A stretch of 32,000 nt of DNA from Zygophlyctis sp. KS116. Taxonomy: Eukaryota > Fungi > Chytridiomycota. Shown piece after piece: positions 5,865 through 32,000 of the stretch. The DNA lies in NCBI GenBank assembly GCA_054661495.1, contig BAAFSQ010000004.1:1-32000 (forward strand), read 5' to 3'. A program made the position numbers and the translations under genes. The notes beneath the pieces are model-generated. The model searched no databases. It was not told where the DNA came from and saw nothing but the letters and a program-made list of their open reading frames with translations. Positions within the stretch are counted from its first letter, which is position 1, and every line of letters begins with the position of its first letter.

Positions 5865-7166
5865 CTAAATAGTACTCTTGCTTTTTTGATTTTTGAGCTC
5901 CAACTTGTATAAATCAAATGTTCTTCCTAGAGTCTTTTGAACTAAAAGATCGTGTTTAAGTTGTGTACGCCAATTTGAATGACGATGATATCTATGTACT
6001 GCAAAGGCCTTTGGAAGAACCATAAAATCAAATCCTGCGTATTGCATTGCCATCGCATTAGCTCTTTTATTAAATCCATCTTTAAATTAGAATTATAAAT
6101 TAAAGTACATCCTCTAAACCGCTCACTAAACTCTGGTATCAAATCCTTTTGAGCTATAAAGTATGGTTCATAGTAAGCATCCAAAACATTAGCCTTTTTA
6201 TGAACTTGATATACCTCTGAAGAAGATAACCATTTAGTATAATCTGTGAGATTCTGAACTCGTGTAATCTTTAAATGCTTTGGTTCAGAGGAATTCCCAT
6301 GGCACCAGTCCTTAAGATCATGTTTAGAATAACTAATCCGACTCATTTTCTTTGAATGAAACGGAATTAACCTTCCCGTTGAACAATACTGTCGTAATTC
6401 CTTCATATCGAATTCAGATGGCATAACTTCCTTTTCAAATATCCATTCAAAAACCGGAACTACTAGAGCCAAAGGTGATTTGGATTTTTGCAATAAATGC
6501 ATATGATCAGCTATAATATCTTTTGCTTTATGAGACATACTAAAGTCCACATCCAAAGAAAATGCATAATTTGATTTACATTGTCTTAATGCCAAATTCC
6601 GTAAAGCATTAATTGGGTATAAGAGATCATAAGGATGAATAGATGCTTTAGATTGCCTTGTTTTATCATAAGCATACAATAAAGATAAGTCTATTTTTGC
6701 ATCATAGTTTAAACGAAGCTTTAGTTTTGCATCCAATTGTTCCATTCTAACAATCAGTTCTGGTTACTTACATGTAATCTATTTCACCATCCTTTTCAAT
6801 ATACAAAGCTACAGATATGTACGCATTCCAAGACGCTGCTAATTCAATAAATGCATCCAATCTATCAACTGATAGTTGCGTAAATAGACATACGTCGTCA
6901 TTGGCGACTGGTTCCAACGACCCAAAAGACTTGTAATCTTTTTTGATTTTGTAATCAATGACCTGTCCAACATATCGACCATCATCATTGTCGAAACTAA
7001 TCGGCACAGTTTCAGAATACACAAGATCCAAGAGATTTTCCCGTCCAAAATCAGCAGGCTCATTAGGGAAAATAGCACTCATAACAACAAAATAAACTGT
7101 AAGGAATCCAACCACATAAACACTCAAACGGATAACTTTTTTTGCAGTAGAAAATCGTTTAATCAT
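5865..7166 (-). CDS. Type II membrane glycosyltransferase, GT49 (LARGE/B4GAT1-like)
   Basis: N-terminal TM, TQLSVDRL, ISVALY, YPINALRNLA, DVD motif, YYEPY and FSERFRGYGFNK (restored by intron 6108-6080); a second intron lies at 6771-6747. Confidence 0.85.
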
Positions 7167-9670: not shown

Positions 9671-12600
9671 CTACTTTCGTAATTTCTTTTTGGATTTCTT
9701 CTTGTTGATTAGTCCTTTAGGATCATAGATTCCATTAGACTCTCCAGCATGCTTAGACGCTAAACTAGCAGCCAAATCTTTTTGTAATTTACGCTTTTTT
9801 TTAGAATCTGGATTTTTAATAGAAACAATGTTGGATCCACCATTGATCTTGACATTTCCCCAATCTTCATCTGTGCCGCCAATTTTAAAACTTGTGTAAA
9901 TTTAGTAAAATCTTACTTTGAAAGATCGAGATTATTTAGAGCTTCAAGTTGTTTAGCTTCATAATTCTTTAATTCTTCATTTCCAGCCTCGTCCAAATCA
10001 TCATTCAAGGACTTACTTAAAGGATCCCAGGCTTCTTCATCATCAACATCTTTTGATGCCTTTTCATCACCCTTGTATTTTTGTGCCATTTGTATTTTAG
10101 CCTTGTCATCATTCTCCTTAATTTCTGTTTCTATCCCTTTTTCAACAATCGAATTTAGATATCCACTTGCCTTTCTAATAGATTTTCCTAATAATGCGAG
10201 AATTTGACTGACAGGAATTTCCAAGTCTTTTGACAAATCATCAATAGTCTTCTTCTGTAGACCAACGCCTGCAATAATTGCAGATTGAACTGCAGAGAGC
10301 TTGACTATGCTTGACTCACTTGCTATTTCTGCTTTTCTTTGGAGTCGGTTCATAAAATAGCATTTGGCCAATGCACAAAGCAAATCCATAATGACATGAT
10401 AATCTAGCAAGTTTTGAGAGTAAGAACTAAGGCGCTTCAAATCAAAGGGCGTGAAGTGGCGGAACACCTCATCATAATTATCGATATTGGCTAATATGTC
10501 AAATGAATAAAAAATTACATGATACTCGGTCATTTTCTGAATTGATAACCTTACTCGAGACTTGATTTGAATCAGATGAAGCGTCAATAATACTAAGAAC
10601 GAGTAGAGGAGAAAATGTTCGGAACTGATATGCAAGAAGTTCAAGGAATCTACGCCTAAAATCTTTTGAAAAATCAGAAAGCCATGATCCATTTCCTACT
10701 ACAACGTCGCTTCCTGGAGCCTGCAAAGTTTTGAGCATAATGCAAGTATGCTCTCCCGTTAGATCATTAGCTGTTTGACGCAAATAAACTGGCTTATATC
10801 CCGAGCGCTTCCAGAACTTATGAAGCGGTGCAGTGAGCCCATAAGAAACACCCAACCATTGAAGCTGTTCTTTTAGTGGGCGCTGTGAGAGCTTGAGGAG
10901 CATAGGAGGCATAGATGAAGCATCACGCACCTTGATGTTTTCAGTTAAAATATTCGAATCTTCCATTTCTTCATCAGTAACTCGCGGCATTTCTTGAATT
11001 ATAGAGTCTTCTTCAGCCAAGGACTGAATTTTTCCCGAAAAATATTCTTCTAATTGTTCCAGCGCCCTACTACCGTATCCCATACTACTATAATCAGGAT
11101 GTGTTGCGATTCTCACTACACGGCCTCCTGACAATGTTGCAAAGTCATCATCTTGAAACTGCTGTGCCACTACCCAAGGGATTAAATCTCCAGAAGAGCG
11201 AACACCACGAGACAAAGATGATAAAGCTGTGCCTTTAGAAATTGCACCTTCAAGACACACTTGAAGTACACATAGGGGTTCTGGTAGAGATGATGCATTT
11301 TTCTCGTCAATAGGCGGTAGCAGAACAAACAAATGATGCGCAGGAGCGTCACTAAATATCAAAACAAATGAACATACCTGAGTAACTGCAAATCATTTGG
11401 GGAGTTCTTATAATGGCTAGCAACGTACAATGACATCATTTTTTGAAGGAAAGCTTCGGAAACAGGATGATAGCTGAATAAAGTGTCACGATTAACATAG
11501 TATAGCTCACACATTGATGGATGAGGACATCCAACATTAGCGCGCATTTTACTAAAATCAGGATTGCAGCAGTTTAGACATAATAAATTATTGAGCCAAT
11601 TTTCTACAGCATCATTTCGACCATAACGAATAGGCTCTTCTAGTTTGACTTCCCGAAGAGTTCGTCCACCAATTGAAGGAGAAAGAGTATCTTTCGTTTC
11701 CTTTCCATCTCGTCCCACGTTAACACCATTCATGGAATCACTCTTAACAGTTCGGCTCTGTTCTCTTAACTGCTGAATCAGTTTAAGCGACAATGAACGG
11801 CCTGTTCCTTCATAACCATTTATAGTAGAAGCCATAAACACAAGATAAGGACCCATTAATTTCTTAACAACCGGAAGAGGAATAGCTGCAGCCTCATCTA
11901 TAACTACTAATTCCGCCTGTGCCAATATATGGTGATCAGATGGTTGAATCCACTACAATATAAATCAAAAAAAAATTAATACCTGAATAGTTTGCCGATG
12001 CTCCTTGAAAACATTAACTCTTACAATTGCCTTTTGAAAATCTGGATTATTTGATTGAATAATATCATAATCCAAATGTTCTTTATAATCAAGAGCATCA
12101 AATCCCTTAAAAATAAACTCAAATAGAGTCTTTAAATTCTCTGGTGTTGGAGAGGTTATAAAGATATTAGAATAGCCATATGCCACAGCTGAAGCTATTG
12201 CTAATCCCAATGCAGCAGATTTCCCTCTACCTCTTGCAGCTGTTAAAGTAACTGTAGACCTGAGAGTCTTTTCAGAAATTGCATCTATAAAAGTCAAAAT
12301 TGCTTTTGCCTGATCAATAGTTTTTGCACAAGAGACTAAACTTCCTGTAGGAGACACATCCTTTAAAGAATCTTTCAAATCTACCAATTCCTGATCAACT
12401 TGTTCACTTTCTTCTTGATCCTTTTTAATCGGTTTAACACTTTTACCAGCACTTAAAGGAAGAACATTTAGTTCATCATCAACCACTAAACAGTTTGAAC
12501 AACCACCTAGAGAAAGAATAAATCTCTCATTAAATCTAGCAACCATTTCTTGATGAGATTCAGTTCTATACCTATTTTTTCAAAACATAAACTTGTATAC

Positions 12601-14847: not shown

Positions 14848-15658
14848 ATGTTAAACACTGAATCAAAGTTCCAATTTAATACGTTTGAGAATTACAAGTT
14901 TCCAGGATATGAGAGTAAAGACTTTCAAGAATGCATGTACAAGTGGTAATTTTTAGATTTAAGATATAGGGGAATGAAGGGGAATTTGAAGATGATAAAG
15001 TTTGGATATGATCAGTTCTTCAAGCCTTTTCAGATTGAAAGCTTTCTATTGGATTTTTTTAATGATGATGGTGTCCAGTCGCTATTAAAGATTCAAGGTG
15101 GAAGATTGGGTCGTGTTGACCGTGTGTTTCATGATGAATTAAGACATAATGTGACTTCTCTATCCTTCTTTAATATTCTCAAACCAGATATTGTCCGTGA
15201 AAATGGGAATATCTTAAAGTGTTTGGATGAATACTATGAATCTTTTGTGGTTTCGGACCAACTCCGCAAATGTTTACTCATGGAAGAGGAAGAAGTATAC
15301 TCTACATTCTCAGAATTGGATCGTAAAGAATTTATTTTTCATGTATTTAAAAGTCTTTGTTTGGGCGGTACATGTTGTCAATACGAGGATGATCTTGAGC
15401 CGTATCTAGATGCAACAAAGAAAATTTACAAGGATTTGATCACGTAATCCATTCAAAGCTTTAACTTTTAGAGTTGTTAAAGACAAGGAAACAGAAGAAA
15501 TCAAGGTTGCATCATATGTGTATCAAATTATGGGATTAGAGTCTAGTCTGTCACCTCTTTTTCCTATTAAACATCCACAGAATTTTTGTTATATAAGTAT
15601 TGATCCAATCAAGCGTCATGTAAATATTTTACATCATGCTTCGGACTCTTATTATTAA
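14848..15658 (+). CDS. CFAP300: Cilia/flagella dynein assembly factor CFAP300 (C11orf70)
   Basis: KWGM, FLLDFFND..V, SDQLRKCLL.EE, EFIFHVFKSLCLGG.CCQYED...YLDATKKIYKDLI, HPQNFCYI.IDP.KRHV; introns 14946-14969 and 15444-15471. Confidence 0.9.
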
Positions 15659-18397: not shown

Positions 18398-21205
18398 TTA
18401 TGTTTCTCTAATAAGCTTCAAAAAGACCTCTTCTAAGGTCGATTGACTGATTCCCCAATTCTTGATAAGGTCGCCTTTAGATTCTTCAACCCATTTCACA
18501 AGCTTTGGAATGTTACCAATAGATTCCATAGGGAATTGATATATTAATGCACCTGCAGAGTCATCTTCTAAAACTGAATTTGGGACCAATTCCGAGATTT
18601 TCTCCTTTACAAAATCAATTTTATCCGTAACAATTGATATACGATATCCAGATCCAAACTTATTTTTCAATCTTATTGAGTTTCCAATAGCTTTAAAGCT
18701 ACCTTTAGACATCACACCAATACGATCTCCTAAAACATCTGCTTCTTCCATAGAATGTGTTGTAAGGATAATAACACGATTCTTTTTGAATTTTTCTATA
18801 AAGGACCACACATGTCGCCGGTTTACAGGATCCATACCAGTGGTAGGCTCATCCATAAAAATAATCTTCAGGTTAGTATCGTCAGTTTTAATTACCTTTG
18901 GGTCACCAATTGTCGATATCACTAGCGATAGCCTTCTCTTCATCCCCCCAGAATATGTGCCTGCTCTAACATCCGCTACAGTTGATAACTTTACAGCTTC
19001 TAATCTGTCCTCAATCAGTTGTTTTCTCTCTGAAGGTCCCACACCTTTTAAACCAGCATATAATTCAATATGTTCTCTAGCCGCTAAAGATTAAAACATA
19101 AGCCACATACTTAGATCATCAAACAGTATATCGTGCTGAGGACATATACCCATTATTGATCGGATTTCAGATATTTGTGATTTAACAGAAAATCCGTATA
19201 TAAGTGCATCACCAGAAGTGGTCGGAGTTAGACCAGATAACATGGATATAGAAGTCTAATGGATAAATTTATAGAACAAATTACCGTTTTTCCAGCGCCA
19301 TTTTGTCCGAGTAATGCAAATCTATAATTAATGAGGTAAAAGATCTTACAATTCACCCTCCTCAAAAGTAATACATGAATTTTTTACGGCAACTTTTGTG
19401 GAATCTTTTTTTCTCCACTTCAAAAGAGGCGGATTATATATTTTTCGAAGGTTTACCACCTTGACAGCCGGCCACATAGTATTACTCAAAGCCTTTTTAC
19501 GCTCTGCAGCTACATCATCATCTTCTTTATCATCAAGATCTAATGATACTTTATATTGATCCAACCAACGATCCTGCTCTGTTTTGTTCCCTTCTTTCTT
19601 TAAGCCCCAATAGCTAGGAAGAAAAAAGAAGTACAGTGGTTGTCTAGCCCCGAAAGCATCTGGAAGTATGTTATCCAGATACCATGCCAATATCCAATAA
19701 ACAAAAACGTCCATGATCAAAAAATACCTTGATATTATAAAAAATAAAATTACCATGCCTGCACTGGAACAGGTATATTAGGGTATTTCCCATCATATGG
19801 CGTTAGCAAATTATTTGGCAGTTTTTCATATAGAGTAGACCAGCTAAAGCCTGGACCAGGTATGAAAGTATTGGTTAAAACGTCTAGCTTTCCTGTAGTT
19901 AAACTGGAAATATCCAAGAGCATATGACCAAAATTGAAGAAAGGAACAAACATTAAAATCAGCCATCCGACATTACTTATTGTATTCTCTGACCACCAAA
20001 TATATCCAACAAAGCTTCCAGAAAACACTACAGTCTCAAAAAGCAATCCAACAATGAAGAAGAAAATACCGATTAAAATAGCTTGTCTGGTTTCCCGTAC
20101 CAATGTAGTAATGAAAAATGCTACAGCGATTAATGCTTCTCCAAATAAAAAATATGTAAAGAACAGCACTCCAAAATCACAATTCTTAAAAGTTTGAAAC
20201 TGAAACATAATCCCAAAAATACATGTAAATAAAGCGTTAAGTGCTACTAGCAAACTATTTGAAATAAAATGAGTAAACCAATATATGAAAGGCTTCAACC
20301 CCATGAGCTCCATACCATGTCTTAGTTTCAGTTCCTTTTCTGTCATTATTGAATTCAAAACATTGATAAAGATAATCATTTCAGAACAGAAAAAGAAAAC
20401 TGGACCCAGTTGTTGAACTACTGAATCCGAAAGAGTCGCAGCTGGAACTGTAGGCCAATCCTTTAATTTAACATTTATAGAAGCATTAACAGATCCCGAA
20501 ATAGGATCATTCAGATATGATATAATAGCTTCATCAATACCTCTAGTAAATGCCAAAATATCTCTTCCAAAAACATCACCAGTCCCTGAAGTACTATTTA
20601 GCGTAGATGTTGCATTATACCATAGCTGATACCTAATGTTCAAAGGAGAAGTGACTTCAGGCTGACTAAAAGTTATTCCCCATCTCGTAGAATTAGGATG
20701 AGTTAATGAATAATTGTAGATAAAATCAGGGCTTGGAACATCAACAATCCCAAGTTGAGATGAAGGTGCCACTTTATAATCTAAAATTTAGTCGACTAAA
20801 TAATATTAGGTACCTGTTAGCCCAGATCCAAAGTTTAGAGAAACGCCAGTCCTTGCGGAATTAAGAGCGGCAAACTTTTCCAAAATACTTGTATAATTTA
20901 TTCCATTTTCAACAGTTTTGGGATAATACATCAAGGTAATACAAGGATCTCCCGGGTTTCTACCCTGACATGCCCCAACTCCCGAAAGATCGGATAATGG
21001 AGGATGTTGAATTGCTTTTGATTGGTTTGCGTAATCAGCCTGTTGTAAAACAAAAATCAATAACAGAAAAATAAATGGAGCAATTATAGTCTGCGCTAGA
21101 GTGGAATTCCAATATCTAATCTATAATGTGACAAATGATTTATACCTGAAGGATTGTATTCCTCCATAGACCAATCTTTAACTGATCAAACCAAGAACTT
21201 CCCAT
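18398..21205 (-). CDS. ABCA-subfamily half transporter (TMD + NBD)
   Basis: [16 protein letters not shown] start, [15 protein letters not shown], Walker [44 protein letters not shown]; seven introns of 25-33 nt. Confidence 0.92.
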
Positions 21206-21212
21206 TCCAAAC

Positions 21213-21321
21213 TGAAGCGCGTAAATTCTCCGATCCGATCGAAGGACTAGTCGATTCAAAGCCACGTTGTAAGACACGGGAGTCCAGCCAGCCCGTCGGA
21301 AGTTTCCTTGGTGGATGCGAA
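21213..21321 (+). repeat. 109-bp GC-rich direct repeat, copy 1
   Basis: Matches 25431-25538 except for one indel and two substitutions; lies 7 nt from the ATG of the minus-strand ABCA. Confidence 0.95.
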
Positions 21322-21512
21322 GTTTTTCTCGTTAAATGCTGATTAGTTTTGAGCAATTTATCAGTGCACTTTTTTATCGGACAGCATTTATATGTTTAGA
21401 TAAATGAAATACTAAAAATTATTAACGGTGATTAACAAATGATTTTGATAAAATGTCAAAACATCTTTATCTAAAAGTCAGACTGGATATGAACAGGAAT
21501 AATTATTTACCG

Positions 21513-21572
21513 ATTTTAGGTAATGACGACATCATGTGAAATGTCTCTATTTTGGGTAATGACGACATCATG
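21513..21572. promoter_or_regulatory. Duplicated motif upstream of the LRR gene (GGTAATGACGACATCATG x2)
   Basis: Exact 18-nt copies at 21519-21536 and 21555-21572, ending 45 nt before the ATG at 21617. Confidence 0.5.
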
Positions 21573-21616
21573 GCACTTGAGGCGTTTCCACGACGACGTT
21601 TCAAAAGAAAAAGCAG

Positions 21617-24600
21617 ATGATCACTACCCGATCAATGGTACTGATTCTCTCCACACTGGTTGTAGCAGTTCAGTCTCAATCTTTTTGCAATTCAACTTCC
21701 CCTCAATGCTGTTATGTTGTCCGATCATGGGAACTGATGGGTCTAATGATTCCTAAGGGCATATTAGCCTATGACAATTCTTGTTGTACCAAGCCTATGT
21801 CTGGTGTGACTTGTGATTCTACAGATACCAGAGTTATTAAGATTGATTGGAATAGTAAGTCTCTTACCCGATCAATTCCTTCAGAGCTTGGAACTTTACC
21901 AGATTTGACTTTGCTGTAAATAATTAACACTAAACATTTAAGTGATGTGAGCAAAAACACTGGTCTCAATGGAACTTTTTCTCAAAAAAATACGATGATT
22001 GTGTAATAACCCTTTATTTTTGATGCATAGACGTGTTGCGTCGACATTGGTCAAACTACAATGCCCAGGGGGATATTTCTCCTCCACCTCATCTGGATCT
22101 TCTAGTTGTATCCAGTGTCCAGCCGGTCAATTTTCTTTAGCTGGGTCGTCAAGTTGCACGCCTTGTCCGGCCGGTCATTATTCTTCTTTAGCTGGGTCTT
22201 CTAGATGTGCTCAGTGTCAATCAGGGGAGTATTCTTCTGTGCCTGGGTCCACTTCTTGTGTTAAGTGCATAGCTGGTCAATACTCTCCATCTGGGTCTCC
22301 TAGTTGCACTAAGTGCCCAGCAGGACAGTTCTCATCTATAGATGGCTCTTCCAACTGCGATGCTTGTCCAGTAGGACAATACTCGTCTTTAGAGGGATCT
22401 ACTAGCTGTACGGTGTGTCCAGCTGGTAAATTTACTTCTTCAACTGGGTCTTCCAGTTGTGGTTTGTGTCCAACAGGAACATACTCCTCTGTCGATGGAT
22501 CCTTGTGTTCTTCCATGTGTCCAGCAGGTCAATATCCTGCCATTAGTTCATCTAGTTGCGCTATTTGCCCAGCAGGTCAATATTCTGCCTCGGCTGGATC
22601 CTTCAATTGCGCTAGTTGCCCAGCAGGTCAATATTCTGCAGCAAATTCTTCCAGCTGCTCTTTATGCCCAAAAGGATATTTCTCTTTGCCTGCGTCTTCC
22701 AGCTGTTATCAAATTTCTTGCGGCTTAACATTAGCTGATTGTTGCTGGACTGCTCTTTCTTGGTCGCTAATGGGGAAAACGATTCCTTCTGATATAAGAA
22801 TCTCTGACAATAGTTGTTGTACTAAACCTTTGGCAGGAGTAACTTGTGATTCTACACAAACAAAGGTTACAAAGATAAATTGGAAAAATCAGGATCTATC
22901 AGGATCTATTCCTTCGCAGATTGGAAATTTAAGTAACTTGCTTGAACTGTAATAATTTATGAATTAATAATTTAAGTTGGTTTTCGGACAACCAAATATC
23001 TGGACAGATTCCACGAGAAATTGGAAAGCTAACGAAATTGATTTACCTGTAACTATTTTTTTATTTATGTTAGTGCCATTGATGGAAATCGGCTCACCGG
23101 AACGATTCCTCCGGAAGTTGGACTCTTGACAAAATTGAATCGCCTGTAAATATTTTTAAAATTAAAATTTAAGTATCCTAGGTGACAATTTACTTAACGG
23201 ACCGATTCCTCTGGAGATTCAAACCTTACAGAATTCGCTTGAACTGTAATCGCCCTCTAATTAAAAAAATAGCCGTCTGCCCAACAATAAACTTGAATCA
23301 ATTCCTTCGGAGATTAAGAACTTAATAAGTTTGACTCATCTGTAAATAATTTCTGAACTTAAAATTTAAGTTATCTTAAAAACAACCAATTCAAGGGATC
23401 AATCACCTCATGGATTGGAAATTTGAAGAAATTGCTTGAACTGTAACTTTTTGAATTAAAATTGAAGGGATTTAAGCAGCAATAAATTTAAAGGTGCAAT
23501 TCCTGAAGAGATTGGAAATTTGAAAAGTTTAACTTACTTGTAATTAAATTACCTTAAAATTAAAGAGATCTTAGTAACAATTTATTTTCAGGATTACTTC
23601 CTTTGGAGATTCAAAACTTAGCGATGTTGACTCAACTGTAAATATTTCCCAGATTTAATATAAGTTTACTGATGAATAATGAAATTTGTGGACCTATTCC
23701 TTCAGGAATTAAGAATTTAAAAATGTTGAAAGAGCTGTAATTATTTACCCATTTCAAATTCTAGTCGTCTTTCAAACAATCTATTCAATGAATCGATTCC
23801 TTCAGAAATAGAAAACTTAAAACTTTTGACTTATCTGTATATATTTATTTTTAAATTTAGTGATATAAGCTGCAATCAACTTTCTGGATCCATGCCTAAA
23901 GAGATTGAAAGTTTGACAAGCCTGTCTCATCTGTAATAAGGTTATTCTTCTAACATTCAAGAAATCTTAGCAATAACGAGATAAAAGGATCTATTCCTGC
24001 AGAAATTGGAAACTTACGGAAATTGCTTGAAATGTAAATATTTTCTAAATTTATAATTTAAGCGATCTGAAAAGCAATAAGTTCAAAGATTCCATTCCTA
24101 TAGAGATTGGAAATTTGAAGAATTTAACTTATCTGTAACTATTTTATACAATTGAAATACCAGTTCTCTCGATGATAATCAACTTTATGGTCCGATTCCG
24201 TCAGTGATTGGAAGTTTAAAAAATTTGCTTGAACTGTAAGAATTGCCTTATTTTATAATAAGTCGTCTTAGTAAGAACCAACTGAATGGATCCATCCCTG
24301 AAGTGATTGGAGGTTTAAAAAGTCTGACTTTTCTGTATTTACTTTTTAATTAAATATTTTAGGGATCTTAGCAATAATTTATTCTCTGGGTCGATTCCTA
24401 GAGATATTGGAAATTTGACGAATTTGATTGAACTGTAAGCGTTTTTTATTCTCAAATAAAAGTAAACTCGGAGTCAATGATCTAGGTGGACCCATTCCTC
24501 CTGCAATTGGAAATTTAACAAATTTGAAGAGATTGTATTATAATCTTTATTTAAATTCAAGACATCTTATTGACAATTTACTCACAGGGAAAATCCCTTC

Positions 24601-25135
24601 AGAACTTGGAATGTTGATAAATTTGGATATTCTGTGGCTTGAGAAAAATCAACTTTCAGGGAAAATTCCTAAAGAGATTGGAGAGCTTCCAAATTTGGAT
24701 AATCTGTAATTATTTTATTTAATTTAATTTTCAGCTATCTTTCTAAAAATCCTGGCCTGAATGGTCCTTTGGTGGCGAATTGCGGGGTTAAAGTGTAAAG
24801 CTCTTGCATTTCTGATAAATAGTTTTATCAAGGAAACTAAAATTCAATTGTGTGGTTGTGCGGCTGCTTCTAGTCCTGCAGACCTTTTCCCACCACTAGG
24901 GACGCCTCTTGCCTGTCTTTCTACTGGCCCCGCTACAACTATGACAAAGAGAGTTCAGGTATATTCTCAAAACATTGGAGATTCAAAGGTCACTTGCAAC
25001 ACTGATAATCTTGGAAATCCCTTCCAGGATTGTTTAAACGCTATGGTTGCAGTATGCGATCCGTCATATATCAATAAAAATGGTAAAAACAACTGCAGAT
25101 ACATTATTGATAACTTAGCTTGGAAAGTGTTCTAA
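21617..25135 (+). CDS. Secreted modular protein: signal peptide, Cys-rich cap + capping exon, 13 Cys-rich repeats, second cap, 18 plant-type LRRs, capping exon, Cys-rich C-terminal domain
   Basis: 21 inferred GT-AG introns of 24-29 nt, all phase 2, give one open frame from 21617 to TAA 25133-25135. LRR consensus is xLxxNxLSGxIPxEIGNLxxLxxL. Confidence 0.88.
22062..22706 (+). repeat. 13 Cys-rich CPAGQYS-type coding repeats (ephrin-receptor-like/GCC2-GCC3-like)
   Basis: 16-18-aa units CxxGxY/FS....GSSSCxx within one intronless exon that is higher in GC than its surroundings. Confidence 0.85.
22977..24705 (+). repeat. Array of LRR exons with ~99-nt periodicity
   Basis: Fifteen 72-nt exons, one 69-nt exon (23273-23341) and one 144-nt double exon (24562-24705). 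Confidence 0.92.
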
Positions 25136-25289
25136 CGCAGAGTTACTTTTAGTGCAAAACGCATATTACAATAGTAGAACTGGCCCTATCTATGTAACAA
25201 CAGATCAAACTGCATCCTGGAAAGAATTCCTATGGAATAATCAAGCCCTTAAATGACCACAGTGATTATATATTTCATAAACCGAAAGT

Positions 25290-25382
25290 CTTAAAAAATC
25301 TACAAAACAACAAAAAAATCTACAAAATCTACAAAAAAACAAAAAAACTTAAAAAATCTACAAAACAACAAAAAAATCTAAA
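25290..25382 (+). repeat. A-rich low-complexity tandem repeat
   Basis: cttaaaaaatctacaaaacaacaaaaaaatcta occurs at 25290-25322 and 25348-25380, with AAAATCTAC subunits between. Confidence 0.85.
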
Positions 25383-25430
25383 GAGGTTCTTCTGAATTAA
25401 AATAAAATGGTTTATGAAATAACCAACCCA

Positions 25431-25538
25431 TGAAGCGCGTAAATTCTCCGATCCGATCGAAGGACGGTCGATTCAAAGCCACGTTGTAAGACACGGGAGC
25501 CCAGCCAGCCCGTCGGAAGTTTCCTTGGTGGATGCGAA
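25431..25538 (+). repeat. 108-bp GC-rich direct repeat, copy 2
   Basis: Near-identical to 21213-21321 and in the same orientation; overlaps the ATG at 25532 of the plus-strand ABCA. Confidence 0.95.
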
Positions 25539-28500
25539 ATTCTAAAACGACCTACCCTCAAGACTTTATGGACAATCAGGCGACTACAAATGAGGTCCCC
25601 GAGCCTTGTGACAATGCTCCAATTATCCCAGGAAAACCAAGGCAAGTCAAGGCATTGGCAATGAAGGCGATCTCTGCTCAAAAGAGGGCCGTATTCACAA
25701 ATGTTTGCTGTATTCTGTTGTGTCCTTTGCTGATGGTGGCATTTTCGTCTATTTTAGGAAAGGTTATTTTGTCTCTTATTCAGCGATCCAGTGTCATTGA
25801 AGGTATTTTTCCATTTTTTACGACTTTAGAGATCCTCTATTGCTCCAATGTAAATGCTATGGATAAAGCATTAAATATACCAATCTTAAACAGATCACTT
25901 TCCACTATACCTGTGACTGATGCGAGTGGGATTACTGGTGCTACAGCGGAGACTATTAAGCATGTTAATTATAATTTATTACGTGTGTTATCTACCAGAG
26001 GGCCTCCTGGTGCTGCTGCTTTAGGTTTTCAACAGCCATGTGTTCATTGGTTCGGGGAGAATTATCCTAAATCAGCGTTATATGAGCAGCCAGTGGACAA
26101 TACGAGCTCTCCTTTGCTGTTAAGAGATAGGTACTATTAGATTTGTTAATTTTAGTACTTTCACTGCAGAACCCCTAAAAGGATGGTTTTTATCTCTCAA
26201 TGCAGTAGGTGCAGATCCGATAAATAATGTTTTCTTTTCTTCTAAACAATTAAGATCAAATTATTTGTTTGGAAACGATCCTAACGTTGTTAATGATGCA
26301 CTATTAGGTAGCAGGCAAATTACAGAACAACTCTCATCTAATCAATTTACTTTATTAGCGAGTACAAGCGCTAATAGCTCAGCCTTTGTCTCTCCAATTT
26401 CAAATTCTGCAATTGGTATCCTGGGAACAATTCCAACAAGATATTGGTTGAATTATTCACTAGCTGGTGGATTTAGTCTGAATGGATTTCAACAAGTTCC
26501 CATATTTTCAAAAATTAGCGCAAATCCGGATGATTTAGATACTCAAATCACTGATAGTATAACTGTAGCATTACAAAAAATTGCTTCAGTTGATAAATCA
26601 ATCCTTACTACACCTAATAGGCCTTCAGGGGAAACTGCTGCTTTTCTTCTAAGTTTGGAAAAGTATCTCGCACCATTACCTTATGGGGGTGTATTTTTTT
26701 CAAATATTAAACATGCTGAAAAAATTTATGAATGGATTGTCAATATTGGATCTGACAAGAGACTTGTGTCTTCGACAAATTTTCCGCCACCTGGAATCAG
26801 ACAGCTGTACCTACAGACAGCTTTGGATAATGGTATTTTTAGAAATGGAAATGTTTCGAGTTTTGGAGATGCTACTATAACTCAGGGGTTCAGATCTATG
26901 CCTCAACTAAGAAGTACCAAAATTGAAATTGCTTTTGATGGACTTATCGGTGGTATTTTGTACCCGTTAGGGATTTCTTTTCTGTTGCCTATCTTTGTGG
27001 TGACTCTAGTAAAAGAGAAAGAAGATAGGATAGCTGTCATGATGAAGATGAATGGGTTGAAAACTGCAGTTTATTACTTAAGTCATTTTGGTACGGTTTT
27101 TAATTACTTATGAATAGTTACGTTTTTCATCTTGTCTTTTATTTCTTTCGCAGTTTTTATTATTTCAGGCTCTCGTTTGGGGCTGTCTATGTTCACTGCT
27201 ACTCAGTCATCAGTCATAATTGCTCTATTTTTTCTATGGGCAATAGCTCAAATCTCATTAGCATTCTTCTTCGGATCATTGTTCAACAGATCAAGATTTG
27301 CCAATATTGCTGTGATTTTATTGGTATTGTGCTCTGTCATTATATCATTGGGAATTGACAATCTATATCCTGATGATCCACTGTCTAATGCTTATTTTTT
27401 GTGGCCACCATTTGCGTTTTATCGTGCTCTGGGCATCATAAATCGGGCATCATTTACTGCAACCCAGATTGTATTTAACTTTCTATTGACATTTTAGCCA
27501 TATAAAGGGTCAGACCTGATTCCTGGTAGAGAAGTCTCAAATGCTATGTTATTTCTATTGTTTGATTCAATCATATATTCAGGGCTGGCTATATATTTCA
27601 GTATTGTGCTCCCCAAAGAATTTGGAATACAAAAGCCTTGGCATTTCCCCGTGACTGGCATCATCAATAGGTACAAATCTGACAAAAGAATAAAAAAGGA
27701 CGGTGTTGTAAATTGTAACTTTATAACTTACTATTAGGATAAAGATTCCGAAAACTATCAGGCAGTGAATATAAATATGGATGAATCTGAACTTAAGTTG
27801 GAAGATCAAGATGTTAAGGATGAACGTTCGAGCGTAATGAAGAATGAATATAATCCTAACTGTCCGCTGATAATGAAGAGTATGCGCAAAATATATCCTG
27901 GCAGAGGTGGTCTTGGACCAAAATTGGCCGTAAAAGATGTCACATTAGCTGTAGAAAGTGATTTAATTTTTGGGCTCTTAGGACCTAATGGTGCTGGTAA
28001 GATTTGAAGAAAAGGTTCTAATTATTAAGGCAAAACGACACTGATAAGCATTTTGGTTGGCCTTTATGAAAAATCATCAGGTGAGGCAAAGCTTGCCGGA
28101 TATGATTTGGAGACACAGTCTGAATATGTGTACCGTAAAATTGGAGTATGTCCACAGTTTGACATTCTATGGGAGGATCTGACTGTTGAAGAGCATTTAT
28201 ATTTTTACGCAAGATTAAAAGGAATATCCGCAGCTGACGAAGCCAGTGCCGTCAATGAGTCTCTTAAAAGGGTATCATTGGTTGATTTGCGCAGAAACCT
28301 CTCAAAGGCACTTTCAGGTGGAGAGAAAAGAAGACTTAGTATTGCAATCGCTTTGGTTGGTAATCCCTCTGTCGTATTTCTTGATGAACCCACTACTGGG
28401 CTTGATCCTGAAGTCCGACGACTTATTTGGAACATTATTAGTGAGGCTAAAAGTGGAAAGAGTATTGTTCTTACCACTCATTCAATGGAAGAAGCAGAGG

Positions 28501-28865
28501 CTTTGTGCGGTAGGATAGGTATTATGGCCAAGGGAACTTTACGATGCCTTGCTAATCCAACCCGCTTGAAGCAGCTGTACGGATCTGGATTCAAACTATT
28601 TTTCAATTCTTTGGAAAGTTCGACTGAAGAAGCATCAAAGTTTATTGAATCTTTACTCCCAGAAGGTTGGACGAAAATAGATGCATTTGCAACCAATGTA
28701 TCCTATGAATTCCCTGCTGTAGATGGAACTATAGGATCTCTCTTTGAACAGATTGAACAAGAAAAATCAAAGCATGGGATATTAGATTGGGGGCTTGGAC
28801 AAACCACGTTAGAGGAAGTCTTTATTCGTCTTATCGGCGATGAAGATGCGCAAGCAGCATACTAA
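25532..28865 (+). CDS. ABCA-subfamily half transporter (start 25532 or 25568)
   Basis: [78 protein letters not shown]; introns 25803-25829, 26131-26155, 27091-27117, 27471-27497, 27708-27737, 27997-28029. Confidence 0.93.
27736..28520 (+). repeat. Segment apparently identical to 31216-32000 (NBD-coding region, including an intron)
   Basis: Line-by-line match at offset 3480; the ORF track gives identical translations in both copies. Confidence 0.93.
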
Positions 28866-29022: not shown

Positions 29023-32000
29023 ATGAATATGAAAGATTCAAAGTCTCCTATTCTCAGTAAACATACATACCAGCCGATCGCCCCAGGAAAACCAAGGCAA
29101 GTCAAGGCATTGGCAATGAAGGCGATCTCTGCCCAAAAGAGGGCTGTATTCACAAATGTTTGCTGCATTATCTTGTGTCCTTTGCTGATGGTTGGATTTG
29201 CTGCAGCATTCGGAAAAGTGATCTTGGGACTTATTCAAAAATCAACCCCTATTAGTGGTAATGCCGTCATTCTCTAAATTTAGAAATTGTTTATTGTTCT
29301 AATGTAAATGCAATGAATAATGATTTAAATATCCCAATCTTCTCTCCTCTAGGAGCGGCTAATGCATCCACTAATGTGATAAATCATGTCAATTTTAACT
29401 TGCTGCCTGTTTTTTCTCGTAAAGGACCGCCTGGTGCATCAATATTTTCGTTTCAACAGCCATGCGTTCATTGGTTTGGGGAAGATTATCCTAATTCGGA
29501 TTTATACGAGCGTCCTGTTGATATGGATCTCTTGGCAAAGGTTCATGCAGCTCAGTTTCCAAATTTAACTCAAGCCTCTATAAAGTCGTCTAGGATCGAA
29601 TTTAGAGACAGGTAATCTAATGTTAATAATTTAAGTGTTTTCTCTGGCGAACCTAAGATTGGGTGGTTTGCTTCGTTGACGGTTCAAATGGATCCTTTAG
29701 TCAATCTTTTCTTTTCTGGGAAACAACAGAGATCTTATTATGTATTTGGAAATGATCCCAGTGTTGTAAACGATTCGCTTTTAGGCAGTAGGAATAATAC
29801 AGAGCAAATAAGTAGCAGAAAGTTTTTGGAGATGGCTATATCTGGAATGGATATACCTGATTTTGTTAGTCCAAAAGATAACAAATTTGCTGGTATTTTG
29901 GGTACAATTCCAACACGATATTGGCTGAATTATTCACTTAAGAATGAAGGTTATCCTATTGTTAACGGCTTCCAACCTGTTCCTCTATTCAGACGAAAAA
30001 GTGATGTGGCGACCGATTTGGATGATTATATATCGGAGGAAATTGAAAAAGCATTGTCTAAAATTTCAAGTGTGGATAAGAGTATTGTGATGAACAATAA
30101 TGCAGATAAACTCGCTATCAATTCTTTTTTTCTAGATCTTGAGCAATATCTGGCTAATTTGCCGTATGGAGGCGTTTTCTTCTCTAAAATATCTCATGAA
30201 GAGAAGAATTATGAATGGATATATAACATTGGAATGGATATGAGACTAGTATCGTCTAGTAACTTCCCTGCACAAGGTATTCGCCAGCTTTATTTACAAA
30301 CCGCTCTTGACAATGGCATACTTCGAAATGGGAACATGTCGAGTTTGGGTGCCGCACAGATTACCCAGGGTTATCGCTCAATGCCAGAAGTAAGAAGCAC
30401 TAAAATAGATTTCCCCTTTGATGGACTAATTGGTGGAATTTTATATCCATTGGGTATATCCTTCTTACTTCCTATTTTTGTTGTAACTTTGGTAAGAGAG
30501 AAAGAGAGTAGGATTGCAGTCATGATGAAGATGAACGGTTTAAAAACTTCTGTATATTATTTAAGTCACCTATGTATATATTTATCAATCTTCACAAGTT
30601 AGTTACCTTTTTGGTCCTATCAGCATTTTCGATGAGTGTTTTCATTATAGCTGGTATCAAATTCAATTTGTCAATGTTTACTCAGACGGATGTATCTGTA
30701 ATTATTATAACCATGTTTCTATGGAGTATTGTACAAATATCAATGGCATTTTTCTTTGCTTCACTTTTTAATGGATCCAGAATTGCAAATATCTCTGTTA
30801 TACTTACAGTATTATGTTCTGTTATAATATCTTTGGGAATAGATAATCTTTATCCCGATGATCCATTGTCTTATGCTTACTTTTTGTGGCCGCCATTTGC
30901 ATTTTATCGTGTTTTGGGTATCATTAATCGTGCATCTTTTAGTATCTCCAAAAGGGTAAATGTTACTTATAACATAAAAGGGGTATACATTTTCCAATAT
31001 TATTTCTGAAAATGAAGCAGCTGTGGCCTTGCAGTTTTTGCTTTTGGATTCCATTATTTATTTGTTGATTGCAGTGTATTTGAATTTAATTCTTCCAAAG
31101 GAGTTTGGAACCAGAAAGCCATGGCATTTCCCAATAACTGATCTCATCAAACGCTATAATAGTAGCAAAATTATCAAAAGTGAAAGATTTGTAAATAATA
31201 TGACTAAACATTAGGAGGATAAAGATTCCGAAAACTATCAGGCAGTGAATATAAATATGGATGAATCTGAACTTAAGTTGGAAGATCAAGATGTTAAGGA
31301 TGAACGTTCGAGCGTAATGAAGAATGAATATAATCCTAACTGTCCGCTGATAATGAAGAGTATGCGCAAAATATATCCTGGCAGAGGTGGTCTTGGACCA
31401 AAATTGGCCGTAAAAGATGTCACATTAGCTGTAGAAAGTGATTTAATTTTTGGGCTCTTAGGACCTAATGGTGCTGGTAAGATTTGAAGAAAAGGTTCTA
31501 ATTATTAAGGCAAAACGACACTGATAAGCATTTTGGTTGGCCTTTATGAAAAATCATCAGGTGAGGCAAAGCTTGCCGGATATGATTTGGAGACACAGTC
31601 TGAATATGTGTACCGTAAAATTGGAGTATGTCCACAGTTTGACATTCTATGGGAGGATCTGACTGTTGAAGAGCATTTATATTTTTACGCAAGATTAAAA
31701 GGAATATCCGCAGCTGACGAAGCCAGTGCCGTCAATGAGTCTCTTAAAAGGGTATCATTGGTTGATTTGCGCAGAAACCTCTCAAAGGCACTTTCAGGTG
31801 GAGAGAAAAGAAGACTTAGTATTGCAATCGCTTTGGTTGGTAATCCCTCTGTCGTATTTCTTGATGAACCCACTACTGGGCTTGATCCTGAAGTCCGACG
31901 ACTTATTTGGAACATTATTAGTGAGGCTAAAAGTGGAAAGAGTATTGTTCTTACCACTCATTCAATGGAAGAAGCAGAGGCTTTGTGCGGTAGGATAGGT
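29023..32000 (+). CDS. ABCA-subfamily half transporter, tandem paralogue of 25532-28865 (3'-truncated by the window)
   Basis: Same exon-intron layout (29258-29283, 29612-29635, 30574-30602, 30956-30980, 31191-31214, 31477-31509) and the same motifs. Confidence 0.93.

Follow-up and report, generated by a model that had tools for sequence, protein, structure and literature searches.

In the window examined here, the whole analysed stretch of 32,000 nucleotides from Zygophlyctis sp. KS116, a 4.1-kb fragment carrying one complete LRR gene probably entered the spacer between two divergent ABCA genes in this lineage only, in a host-repair event that left a 112-nt target-site duplication.

Architecture of the locus

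A GC-rich direct repeat brackets an insert of 4,106 nt between the two ABCA genes (Table 1). The preliminary description of this DNA had reported direct repeats of about 108 bp around the LRR gene, and these proved to be real. The two copies (112 and 111 nt) are 96.4% identical over 112 aligned nucleotides, and their four differing columns comprise two substitutions (T/C at 21283 and G/A at 21322) and one TA-versus-G indel site (21248-21249). The GC content of the repeat is 53-56%, compared to 35% for the 32-kb window. Copy 1 begins 7 nt from the start codon of the minus-strand ABCA gene (21203-21205), and the last 10 nt of copy 2 hold the start codon of the plus-strand ABCA gene (25532), being the first 10 nt of its coding sequence. 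From the empty sites in related species (see below), we conclude that the repeat consists of the former divergent spacer together with the initial 10 nt of the plus-strand ABCA coding sequence, both having been copied at the arrival of the LRR gene, and copy 1 is the putative promoter region that now serves the minus-strand ABCA gene. The repeat is not a dispersed element, which by the preliminary description would have refuted the insertion: there are exactly two copies in the 12.7-Mb assembly, both at this locus. Within the window, it is the sole direct repeat at a spacing of 0.8-9 kb that reaches at least 20 nt and 88% identity. These data come from a fragmented metagenome bin (1175 contigs) of an uncultured lake chytrid, and the structure of the locus is known from the assembled contig.

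Both flanking genes were assigned to the ABCA transporters by Pfam matches to ABC2_membrane_3 and ABC_tran, with a weak ABCA1-like R1 domain below the cut-off. The minus-strand gene starts with exon 1 (21146-21205), followed by a 25-nt intron and exon 2 from 21120; it includes a large exon (19753-20772) and continues to the left to about position 15655. For the plus-strand gene, the upstream ATG at 25532 is considered the true start, since the related species L026 and L027 share the N-terminal peptide pattern. Orthology of the ABCA genes is indicated by 89% identity to P0001, versus 56% for the best own-genome paralogue of the minus-strand gene.

The insert contains the LRR gene alone, with no extra ORF. 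This gene is composed, in order, of a signal peptide, a cap, a Cys-rich Ephrin_rec_like block, a second cap, about 17 one-repeat exons of 72 nt and a 124-aa C-terminal domain. Its approximately 19 introns, of 22-40 nt each and mostly in phase 2, are needed to hold the frame. The LRR assignment is based on at least 13 in-register 72-nt repeats, corresponding to 24-residue units, and the Ephrin_rec_like match reached 110.6 bits against a Pfam cut-off of 23.1. The gene is therefore predicted to encode a plant-type LRR protein with Cys-rich (Ephrin_rec_like/GCC2_GCC3) repeats.

In the 5' flank of the insert, a tandem 24-nt motif (21513-21536 and 21549-21572) resembles the TATA-like core promoter region of the LRR paralogues. 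In these paralogues a TATA-like box lies about 55 nt upstream of the ATG, within the moved unit; the motif in the window is similar but weaker. The 3' flank (295 nt) includes an A-rich tract that ends 46 nt short of copy 2, and the family tail stops 8 nt before that copy. The A-rich tract was rejected as an insertion scar, since it belongs to the 3' tail common to many LRR paralogues. No donor for the LRR gene was found in its own assembly, in which three DNA queries over the whole insert retrieved only paralogues of 64-81% identity, the DNA identity of the best paralogues being 64-76%, and region 21325-21636 had no match at all in a DNA search of the same genome. Thus, copy-paste, cut-paste and an origin from another strain all fit equally. 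With the Cys-rich ORF as query, no orthologue was found among public proteins, only generic repeat proteins of at most 47% identity.

Table 1. Features of the ABCA-LRR-ABCA locus, in positions of the window
Feature	Position	Strand	Basis or description
Minus-strand ABCA gene, 5' part	19753..21205	-	Translation; Pfam ABC2_membrane_3; chytrid ABCA homologues
Repeat copy 1	21213..21324	+	Putative duplicated divergent spacer, upstream of the LRR gene, beside the minus-strand ABCA gene
Orphan start codon copied from the plus-strand ABCA gene, with a 6-codon ORF running from repeat into insert	21315..21335	+	Homology to 25532-25541
5' flank of the insert	21325..21616	+	292 nt, AT-rich (32% GC), unique in the genome
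Intact LRR gene	21617..25135	+	Frame, exon pattern, Pfam match of the Cys-rich block
Conserved LRR-family 3' tail	25273..25422	+	A-rich tract (25279-25384) and AATAAA-containing end block
Repeat copy 2	25431..25541	+	Spacer that has stayed attached to the plus-strand ABCA gene
Plus-strand ABCA gene	25532..28865	+	Pfam; start conserved in relatives

Empty sites in related species

An insertion at this locus, as the preliminary description pointed out, should leave relatives in which the two ABCA genes are adjacent across a single spacer. Such relatives exist. Three related species, L026, L027 and L028/L029, have head-to-head orthologous ABCA genes with no LRR gene between them, and their ATG-to-ATG spacers are 133, 109 and 92 nt, respectively. 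In an ENA contig, both ABCA orthologues are adjacent called genes. Because L028, which has the empty site, branches as an outgroup from the group of the window, L026 and L027, the parsimonious reading is one gain, in the lineage of the window. One further relative, L051, counts against this pattern, showing no ABCA adjacency within 760 nt.

Hardly any alignment with the repeat is possible for the relatives' spacers, which have only a short CGATCGA-type motif in common with it; between species, the mean column identity of the spacers is 56%. Since spacers of different species can hardly be aligned whereas the two copies in the window are 96% identical, the duplication is much younger than the species splits, the only yardstick for its age being species of about 75-80% DNA identity. 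Together with the empty sites in three species, this upholds the earlier proposal of a recent insertion that duplicated the divergent spacer.

A metagenome scan with the minus-strand ABCA exon returned three loci, none informative on the empty site: L023 (62% aa) and L025 (84% aa) lack synteny at the 5' end, and for L024 the match is confined to the gene body. No match was obtained in the bacterial/archaeal genome collection scanned.

Parallel insertions and the route of entry

The preliminary description had also raised the idea that other LRR paralogues are flanked by locus-specific direct repeats. A survey of the paralogues for flanking repeats, covering about a dozen evaluable genes, uncovered two such cases. 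On contig C117, an LRR gene is bracketed by an approximately 205-nt duplication of the promoter and 5' coding sequence of the neighbouring gene. The C117 insert matches the C580 locus at 91-94% identity; its left breakpoint falls inside the C580 neighbour gene, and on the right the homology runs out at the conserved LRR 3' tail. The duplicated copies on C117 are 93.5% identical, on par with the identity of donor (C580) and copy, and the junction shows possible microhomology. On contig C80, an LRR gene is bracketed by a perfect duplication of 25 nt, and the insert is without the conserved 3' tail. This signature at three LRR genes (25, 112 and about 205 nt) suggests that the family expanded and was scattered by repair- or replication-based events, not by transposons.

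The insert in the window was assayed for the features of mobile elements and retrocopies. In the search for terminal inverted repeats, local alignment of its first 150 nt with the reverse complement of its last 150 nt gave a score of 13 (shuffled sequence: mean 13.1, maximum 21); the insert ends showed no inverted pair running end to end, and the insert no transposase. A TIR DNA transposon, including the Pack-MULE type, has a fixed short target-site duplication and identical termini in several copies, whereas the duplications here are of three lengths and the 5' flank has no second copy. Retroposition was considered since the insert ends just past the AATAAA block, and was dropped because the introns and, to judge from the TATA-like motifs, probably a promoter were carried along; a LINE-mediated processed retrocopy was rejected on the retained introns, about 19 in number, and the lack of poly(A) at the 3' junction. 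A Helitron inserts without target duplication, unlike the insertion here with its 112-nt duplication. Taken together, the absence of TIRs, of a transposase and of a poly(A) junction and the retention of introns point to a DNA-level, transposase-independent insertion. We infer that the LRR gene was inserted by host repair rather than by transposition. The 'transposase-less' movement put forward in the preliminary description would fit the lack of TIRs and of any extra ORF as well as the variable duplication length.

The target would have been a 109-nt divergent spacer between the two head-to-head ABCA genes, into which the fragment would have brought its own upstream region and the family-typical 3' tail. 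As the duplication spans nearly the entire spacer, along with the first 10 nt of the plus-strand coding sequence, each ABCA gene would still have the shared 5' region next to it in full length. Two routes may be envisaged: 1) the two strands of the open promoter region would be nicked at sites about 112 nt from each other, the overhangs filled in on either side, and a free fragment the size of a gene captured by end-joining; 2) a replicative template switch, of the SDSA or MMBIR type, would copy an LRR locus and re-enter the target 112 nt upstream. Where spacers measure about 100 nt, as in this genome, both neighbours would stay functional only if the duplication spans the promoter, which would explain why long duplications are seen. 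As expected for break repair or template switching, the relatives have the empty site with one copy of the duplicated segment, and an arbitrary donor breakpoint is seen in the C117 event, where the left end lies inside the neighbour gene of the C580-like donor. Counting against such an origin, the right end of the window's insert lies only 8 nt past the family tail, which may point to a defined 3' end instead of a random breakpoint. Recombination between the repeat copies could plausibly remove the cassette scar-free.

A dedicated, recurrent route for whole LRR genes, in which, for example, excised circles or copied fragments are caught at widely staggered promoter nicks, perhaps guided by the tail, is in our view rather unlikely. 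We regard it as more doubtful still that the LRR cassette is a non-autonomous element mobilised in trans, either by a LINE endonuclease/reverse transcriptase that nicks with variable stagger or by a DNA transposase recognising the LRR 3' tail. The varying duplication length (25, 112 and about 205 nt) does resemble target-primed insertion, and the conserved tail with its AATAAA block both ends close to the window junction and bounds the C117/C580 homology on the right. However, mobilisation in trans accords poorly with the kept introns and the junction without poly(A), with the TATA-like promoter included in the moved unit of the paralogues, and with the lack of TIRs and the unique 5' flank; nor does it agree with the C117 left breakpoint inside the neighbour gene of the donor-like locus or with the tailless insert on C80.

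It is very unlikely that the arrangement is an assembly artefact or reflects a mixed population, in which an empty chromosomal site and an LRR gene with one repeat copy, located elsewhere or circular, were joined through the 111-nt repeat. A fragmented bin invites such an error, and mis-threading can occur at repeats below read length, but the copies differ at four spread-out columns, one of them 2 nt from the right junction, the repeat is absent from the rest of the assembly, and the same architecture with different repeats occurs on two other contigs. Slightly less credible again is an ancestral LRR gene that the relatives lost through repeat recombination, with gene conversion or selection holding the copies alike. 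Direct repeats of 111 nt can drive clean deletion and promoter constraint may act on both copies, yet at least two independent losses would be needed (in L028 and in the L026/L027 clade), and no LRR remnant was found in the spacers of the relatives examined. Moreover, promoter constraint cannot account for the 96% identity, because the spacers evolve fast (56% mean column identity). Scarcely to be entertained is a GC-rich element that was duplicated on its own account, whether it be a small RNA gene or a portable regulatory module, with no connection to the LRR arrival. The element does stand out in an AT-rich genome and its short CGATCGA-type motif recurs in the relatives' spacers; against this, it gave no Rfam match at the gathering threshold or at E<=10 and an empty tRNA scan, and on either strand its fold was poorer than that of shuffled sequence (z = +1.1 to +2.3). 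A family match, a stable fold and conservation in relatives, as expected of a structured non-coding RNA, were thus all absent, and the element exists in two copies only, with boundaries that fall at the starts of both ABCA genes and take in 10 nt of coding sequence.

Significance and comparison with known systems

Insertion by host repair, the reading we favour, makes this locus a natural example, with empty sites, of how a gene may enter a genome with spacers of about 100 nt without wrecking its neighbours: the bidirectional control region, whose promoter function is putative, was apparently duplicated whole, so that each neighbour keeps one. The locus offers a testable model for promoter capture, for antisense transcription from the second copy and for scar-free loss. 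Plant-type LRR repertoires are reportedly absent from fungi (PMC2939053), which makes the spread of such a family in a chytrid relevant to fungal genomics. If a dedicated LRR-moving route did exist, the long duplications would keep the neighbours' promoters, give the newcomer a ready-made promoter and keep the insertion reversible; it would amount to a transposase-less cassette system supplying a fast-evolving recognition repertoire in a near-spacerless genome.

Our literature search provided context but no description of such a promoter-duplicating LRR insertion. Transposon-independent gene insertion during double-strand-break repair, through 'filler DNA' capture or synthesis-dependent copying, has been described for the non-collinear genes of grass genomes. 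Related work includes PMC3445842. The LRR insertions are similar to the grass cases in the gene-sized segment without transposon features, the empty site in relatives, the target duplicated at the junctions and, in the C117 case, arbitrary donor breakpoints. What sets the present case apart from the grass insertions is the great length of the duplication (112 nt, and up to about 205 nt on C117), which takes in a whole putative bidirectional promoter, and the recurrence of such events within a single gene family of a highly compact fungal genome. The inserted genes are also complete and seem functional instead of being fragments. Template-switch rearrangements of the FoSTeS/MMBIR type can also give an insertion flanked by duplicated target, and are comparable in placing a templated copy of a distant locus between two target copies, with possible microhomology at the C117 junction.

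A geometric likeness links the locus to the duplication of the CRISPR repeat on spacer integration and to casposon integration (see, for example, PMC5137440): a whole functional unit is duplicated since two nicks flank it, the repeat in those systems and the promoter spacer here. The likeness is geometric only, as those reactions are enzyme-directed, site-specific and prokaryotic and no integrase is known here. With the target-site duplications of transposons and LINE retrocopies, the insertions share staggered cuts that would be filled on both sides to give direct repeats of host sequence and, as in LINE-1 insertions, a variable duplication length. Unlike those elements, they have no TIRs or LTRs, transposase, poly(A) or intron loss, and their duplications extend over 25-205 nt instead of the fixed few bases typical of transposons.

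The LRR insert and its bracketing repeats

The window belongs to a compact, AT-rich eukaryotic genome (35% GC, introns of about 25-30 nt). In a protein search, the named matches to its ABCA genes were chytrids, e.g. Borealophlyctis, Kappamyces, Rhizoclosmatium and Batrachochytrium, consistent with a chytrid source, and Pfam domains in the flanking genes comprised ABC2_membrane_3, ABC_tran and a weak ABCA1-type R1 match. The preliminary description had placed an LRR gene between near-identical direct repeats next to both ABCA starts, and alignment bore this out: the copies match at 96.4% over 112 columns and differ by two substitutions and a single TA-versus-G indel site. The repeat (53-56% GC) is the only one of its kind in the whole 32-kb window, and a genome-wide check for a dispersed element put its copy number at exactly two in the assembly of 12.7 Mb and 1175 contigs. 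A recognisable RNA was ruled out by zero Rfam matches even at E=10, a tRNA scan that found none, and folding of both strands of both copies that was worse than that of dinucleotide shuffles (z = +1.1 to +2.3).

Coordinates of the LRR insert, its repeats and related features
Feature	Position	Strand	Remark
ABCA- start codon	21203-21205	-	copy 1 begins 7 nt away
Repeat copy 1	21213-21324	+	direct-repeat alignment
Orphan ATG with 6-codon ORF	21315-21335	+	retained in copy 1
LRR gene	21617-25135	+	crude splice parse
LRR 3' tail	25273-25422	+	ends 8 nt ahead of copy 2
Repeat copy 2	25431-25541	+	direct-repeat alignment
ABCA+ start ATG	25532	+	within last 10 nt of copy 2
Repeat on contig C117 (L037)	6936-7117 and 9731-9935		93.5% identical over 155 nt; ~205 nt in intact copy
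Repeat on contig C80 (L043)			perfect 25 nt; brackets 1,703-nt LRR insert
LRR 3' tail, L037	8795-9022
LRR 3' tail, L049	~2611-2721

Two candidate starts, 25532 and 25568, had been proposed for the plus-strand ABCA gene (ABCA+). Because the related-species loci L026 and L027 share the peptide pattern M-R-x4-T-Y-P-x-D-[FY]-M-D, the upstream ATG is evidently the true start, and the downstream one did not hold. The duplicated segment therefore takes in 10 nt of ABCA+ coding sequence, in addition to the divergent spacer minus 7 nt. Further along the plus strand, an exon at 29068-29226, about 200 nt past the ABC_tran/R1 ORF (28053-28865), encodes protein 83% identical to residues 28-80 of the ABCA+ N-terminus, which suggests a tandem ABCA paralogue or half-size ABCA genes duplicated in tandem.

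Within the 4,106-nt insert, one LRR gene is flanked by 292 nt of AT-rich sequence on the 5' side and 295 nt on the 3' side. In a crude splice parse, the gene is readable across about 20 exons with phase-2 mini-introns, and it looks intact because the parse meets no unsplicable stop; its long LRR exon is an Ephrin_rec_like (GCC2_GCC3-type) Cys-rich block in Pfam. No other ORF was found in the insert and no inverted-repeat signal at its ends, no poly(A) was seen at the insert junction, and the 5' flank had zero other matches in its own genome. A tandem 24-nt motif (21513-21536 and 21549-21572), situated 45-105 nt before the LRR start codon, is similar to a TATA-like core promoter block upstream of LRR paralogues on contigs C117, C580, C55 and C41.

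The A-rich tract reported between the copies is present, and it belongs to an LRR 3' tail, in which it is followed by an AATAAA-containing block, that is kept in at least 10 paralogue loci (among them L037, L049, L044, L036, L041, L045 and L046). These tails are 81-94% identical between paralogues, compared with 72-74% for coding ends, and in several pairs homology ends within about 10 nt past the tail. The tail could act as a signal in the 3' UTR, or as a site of recombination or priming.

Empty sites in related species

A protein search with the large exon of the minus-strand ABCA gene (ABCA-) found the 89%-identical protein P0001, and one with the ABCA+ N-terminus found P0044; the two are called as adjacent divergent genes on a single 9,814-nt ENA contig. 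We compared DNA from four related contigs (L026, L027, L028 and L029), all from species other than that of the window, set in window orientation. The ABCA starts lie 133 nt apart in L026, 109 nt in L027 and 92 nt in L028 and L029, which have the same arrangement, and no LRR-like sequence was found between them in any of the four, so that the anticipated empty sites exist. When both copies in the window are collapsed, the gap is 109 nt from the upstream ATG, close to the lower end of the predicted range of about 110-145 bp.

Orthology between the window and these loci is sound, because the best paralogue of the ABCA- exon within the window's own genome reaches only 56% identity. In a short comparison of exon 2, the window, L026 and L027 are 77-92% alike and each is 65% identical to L028, and this equal distance marks L028 as an outgroup. 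A single gain in the window's lineage would account for the data, and ancestral presence of the LRR gene would require at least two losses. The duplication is far younger than the species splits, because the copies match at 96% while alignment of the relatives' spacers to the repeat is poor (mean column identity 56%, a short CGATCGA-GAA-type motif being the sole shared part).

Two further loci differ in arrangement. In L051:1-900 (ENA ERZ19400705 scaffold_14780), from a related species, at least 760 nt run beyond the ABCA- start without ABCA+ until the contig ends: about 105 nt of GC-richer spacer and about 350 nt of AT-rich sequence precede another gene, one with a homologue on contig C374 of the window's genome. 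Either an independent second insertion into this spacer or a rearrangement may lie behind this. In L025:2500-2600 (metagenome contig Ga0315908_10057269), an ABCA- homologue (84% aa) without its first ~90 codons lies at most 60 nt from where an unrelated coiled-coil gene starts, and further on come a LIM-domain gene and a hydrolase; it is either a truncated paralogue or a rearranged locus of another species.

Repeats around other LRR genes

The expectation that LRR paralogues have their own locus-specific repeats was met on C117 (~205 nt) and C80 (25 nt), two further cases among the flanks of about a dozen genes surveyed. On C117, the gene downstream carries a trypsin-like GDSGGP motif; the intact copy consists of its promoter plus its first ~55 codons, and the second copy is a truncated pseudo-5' end. 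The insert is 91-94% identical to an LRR locus on C580, and on the left it breaks off within an exon/intron of the gene that neighbours the C580 locus upstream, an arbitrary breakpoint. Identity between the repeat copies matches that between donor and copy; both features are predicted by a single copy-paste event with target duplication. The 708 nt from the LRR tail to the second repeat copy (L037:9023-9730; C117:21022-21729), whose sole match in its own genome is a 91-nt stretch (86%) on C185, may be a second captured fragment.

In the ~200 kb examined, further repeats of this kind were limited to segments common to tandem paralogues (L040, L046 and L047). On C112 (L040), two LRR genes 5.3 kb apart share a 708-nt direct repeat (795-1496 and 6122-6828, 93.5% identity) over their C-terminal domain and 3' flank, evidence of recent segmental duplication or gene conversion between the two paralogues. 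In a non-LRR region of C55 (L047), the pairs 6469-6507/8307-8345 and 7115-7177/8594-8655 (39 and 63 nt) are ~90% identical with differing offsets, and are probably tandem paralogous genes.

Nature of the insertion

From the geometry, the target segment must have been copied to either side of the inserted LRR gene. The genome is a fragmented metagenome bin, in which mis-threading during assembly, or an empty chromosome alongside a circle, might produce such an architecture; this is unlikely, however, given the four differences that separate the copies and the recurrence of the architecture at other loci. An RNA intermediate was considered since the 3' tail ends so close to copy 2. The window's LRR gene retains all its introns, and the unit moved in the best-sampled LRR subfamily carries a TATA-like box ~55 nt ahead of the ATG; an mRNA copy would have neither, which argues against this route.

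We therefore read the insertion as a DNA-level, transposase-independent event. The open spacer, transcribed divergently, could receive two nicks on opposite strands at points ~112 nt apart; both overhangs would then be filled in and a free gene-sized fragment captured by end joining. Alternatively, a replicative template switch could copy an LRR locus and re-enter the target upstream. These routes fit better than any integrase with duplications that vary in length (25, 112 and ~205 nt), with the absence of defined termini and with the arbitrary breakpoint on C117. No donor for the window's LRR gene was found in the assembly (best paralogues 64-76% identical) or in public proteins, so the two routes are inseparable.

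Selection probably filters the outcomes: with spacers of ~100 nt, only insertions duplicating the control region would leave both neighbours working. With copy 1, a plus-direction ABCA promoter would lie ahead of the LRR gene, with copy 2 a minus-direction promoter would face into its 3' end, and the 111-nt repeats could allow scar-free loss of the cassette. With the repeat confirmed, the empty sites in relatives support the earlier reading of a promoter-duplicating LRR insertion between the ABCA genes. The evidence supports gene insertion through repair or replication, accompanied by target duplication, a known kind of process; what distinguishes this case is the duplication of a whole bidirectional promoter and the recurrence within one fungal LRR family.
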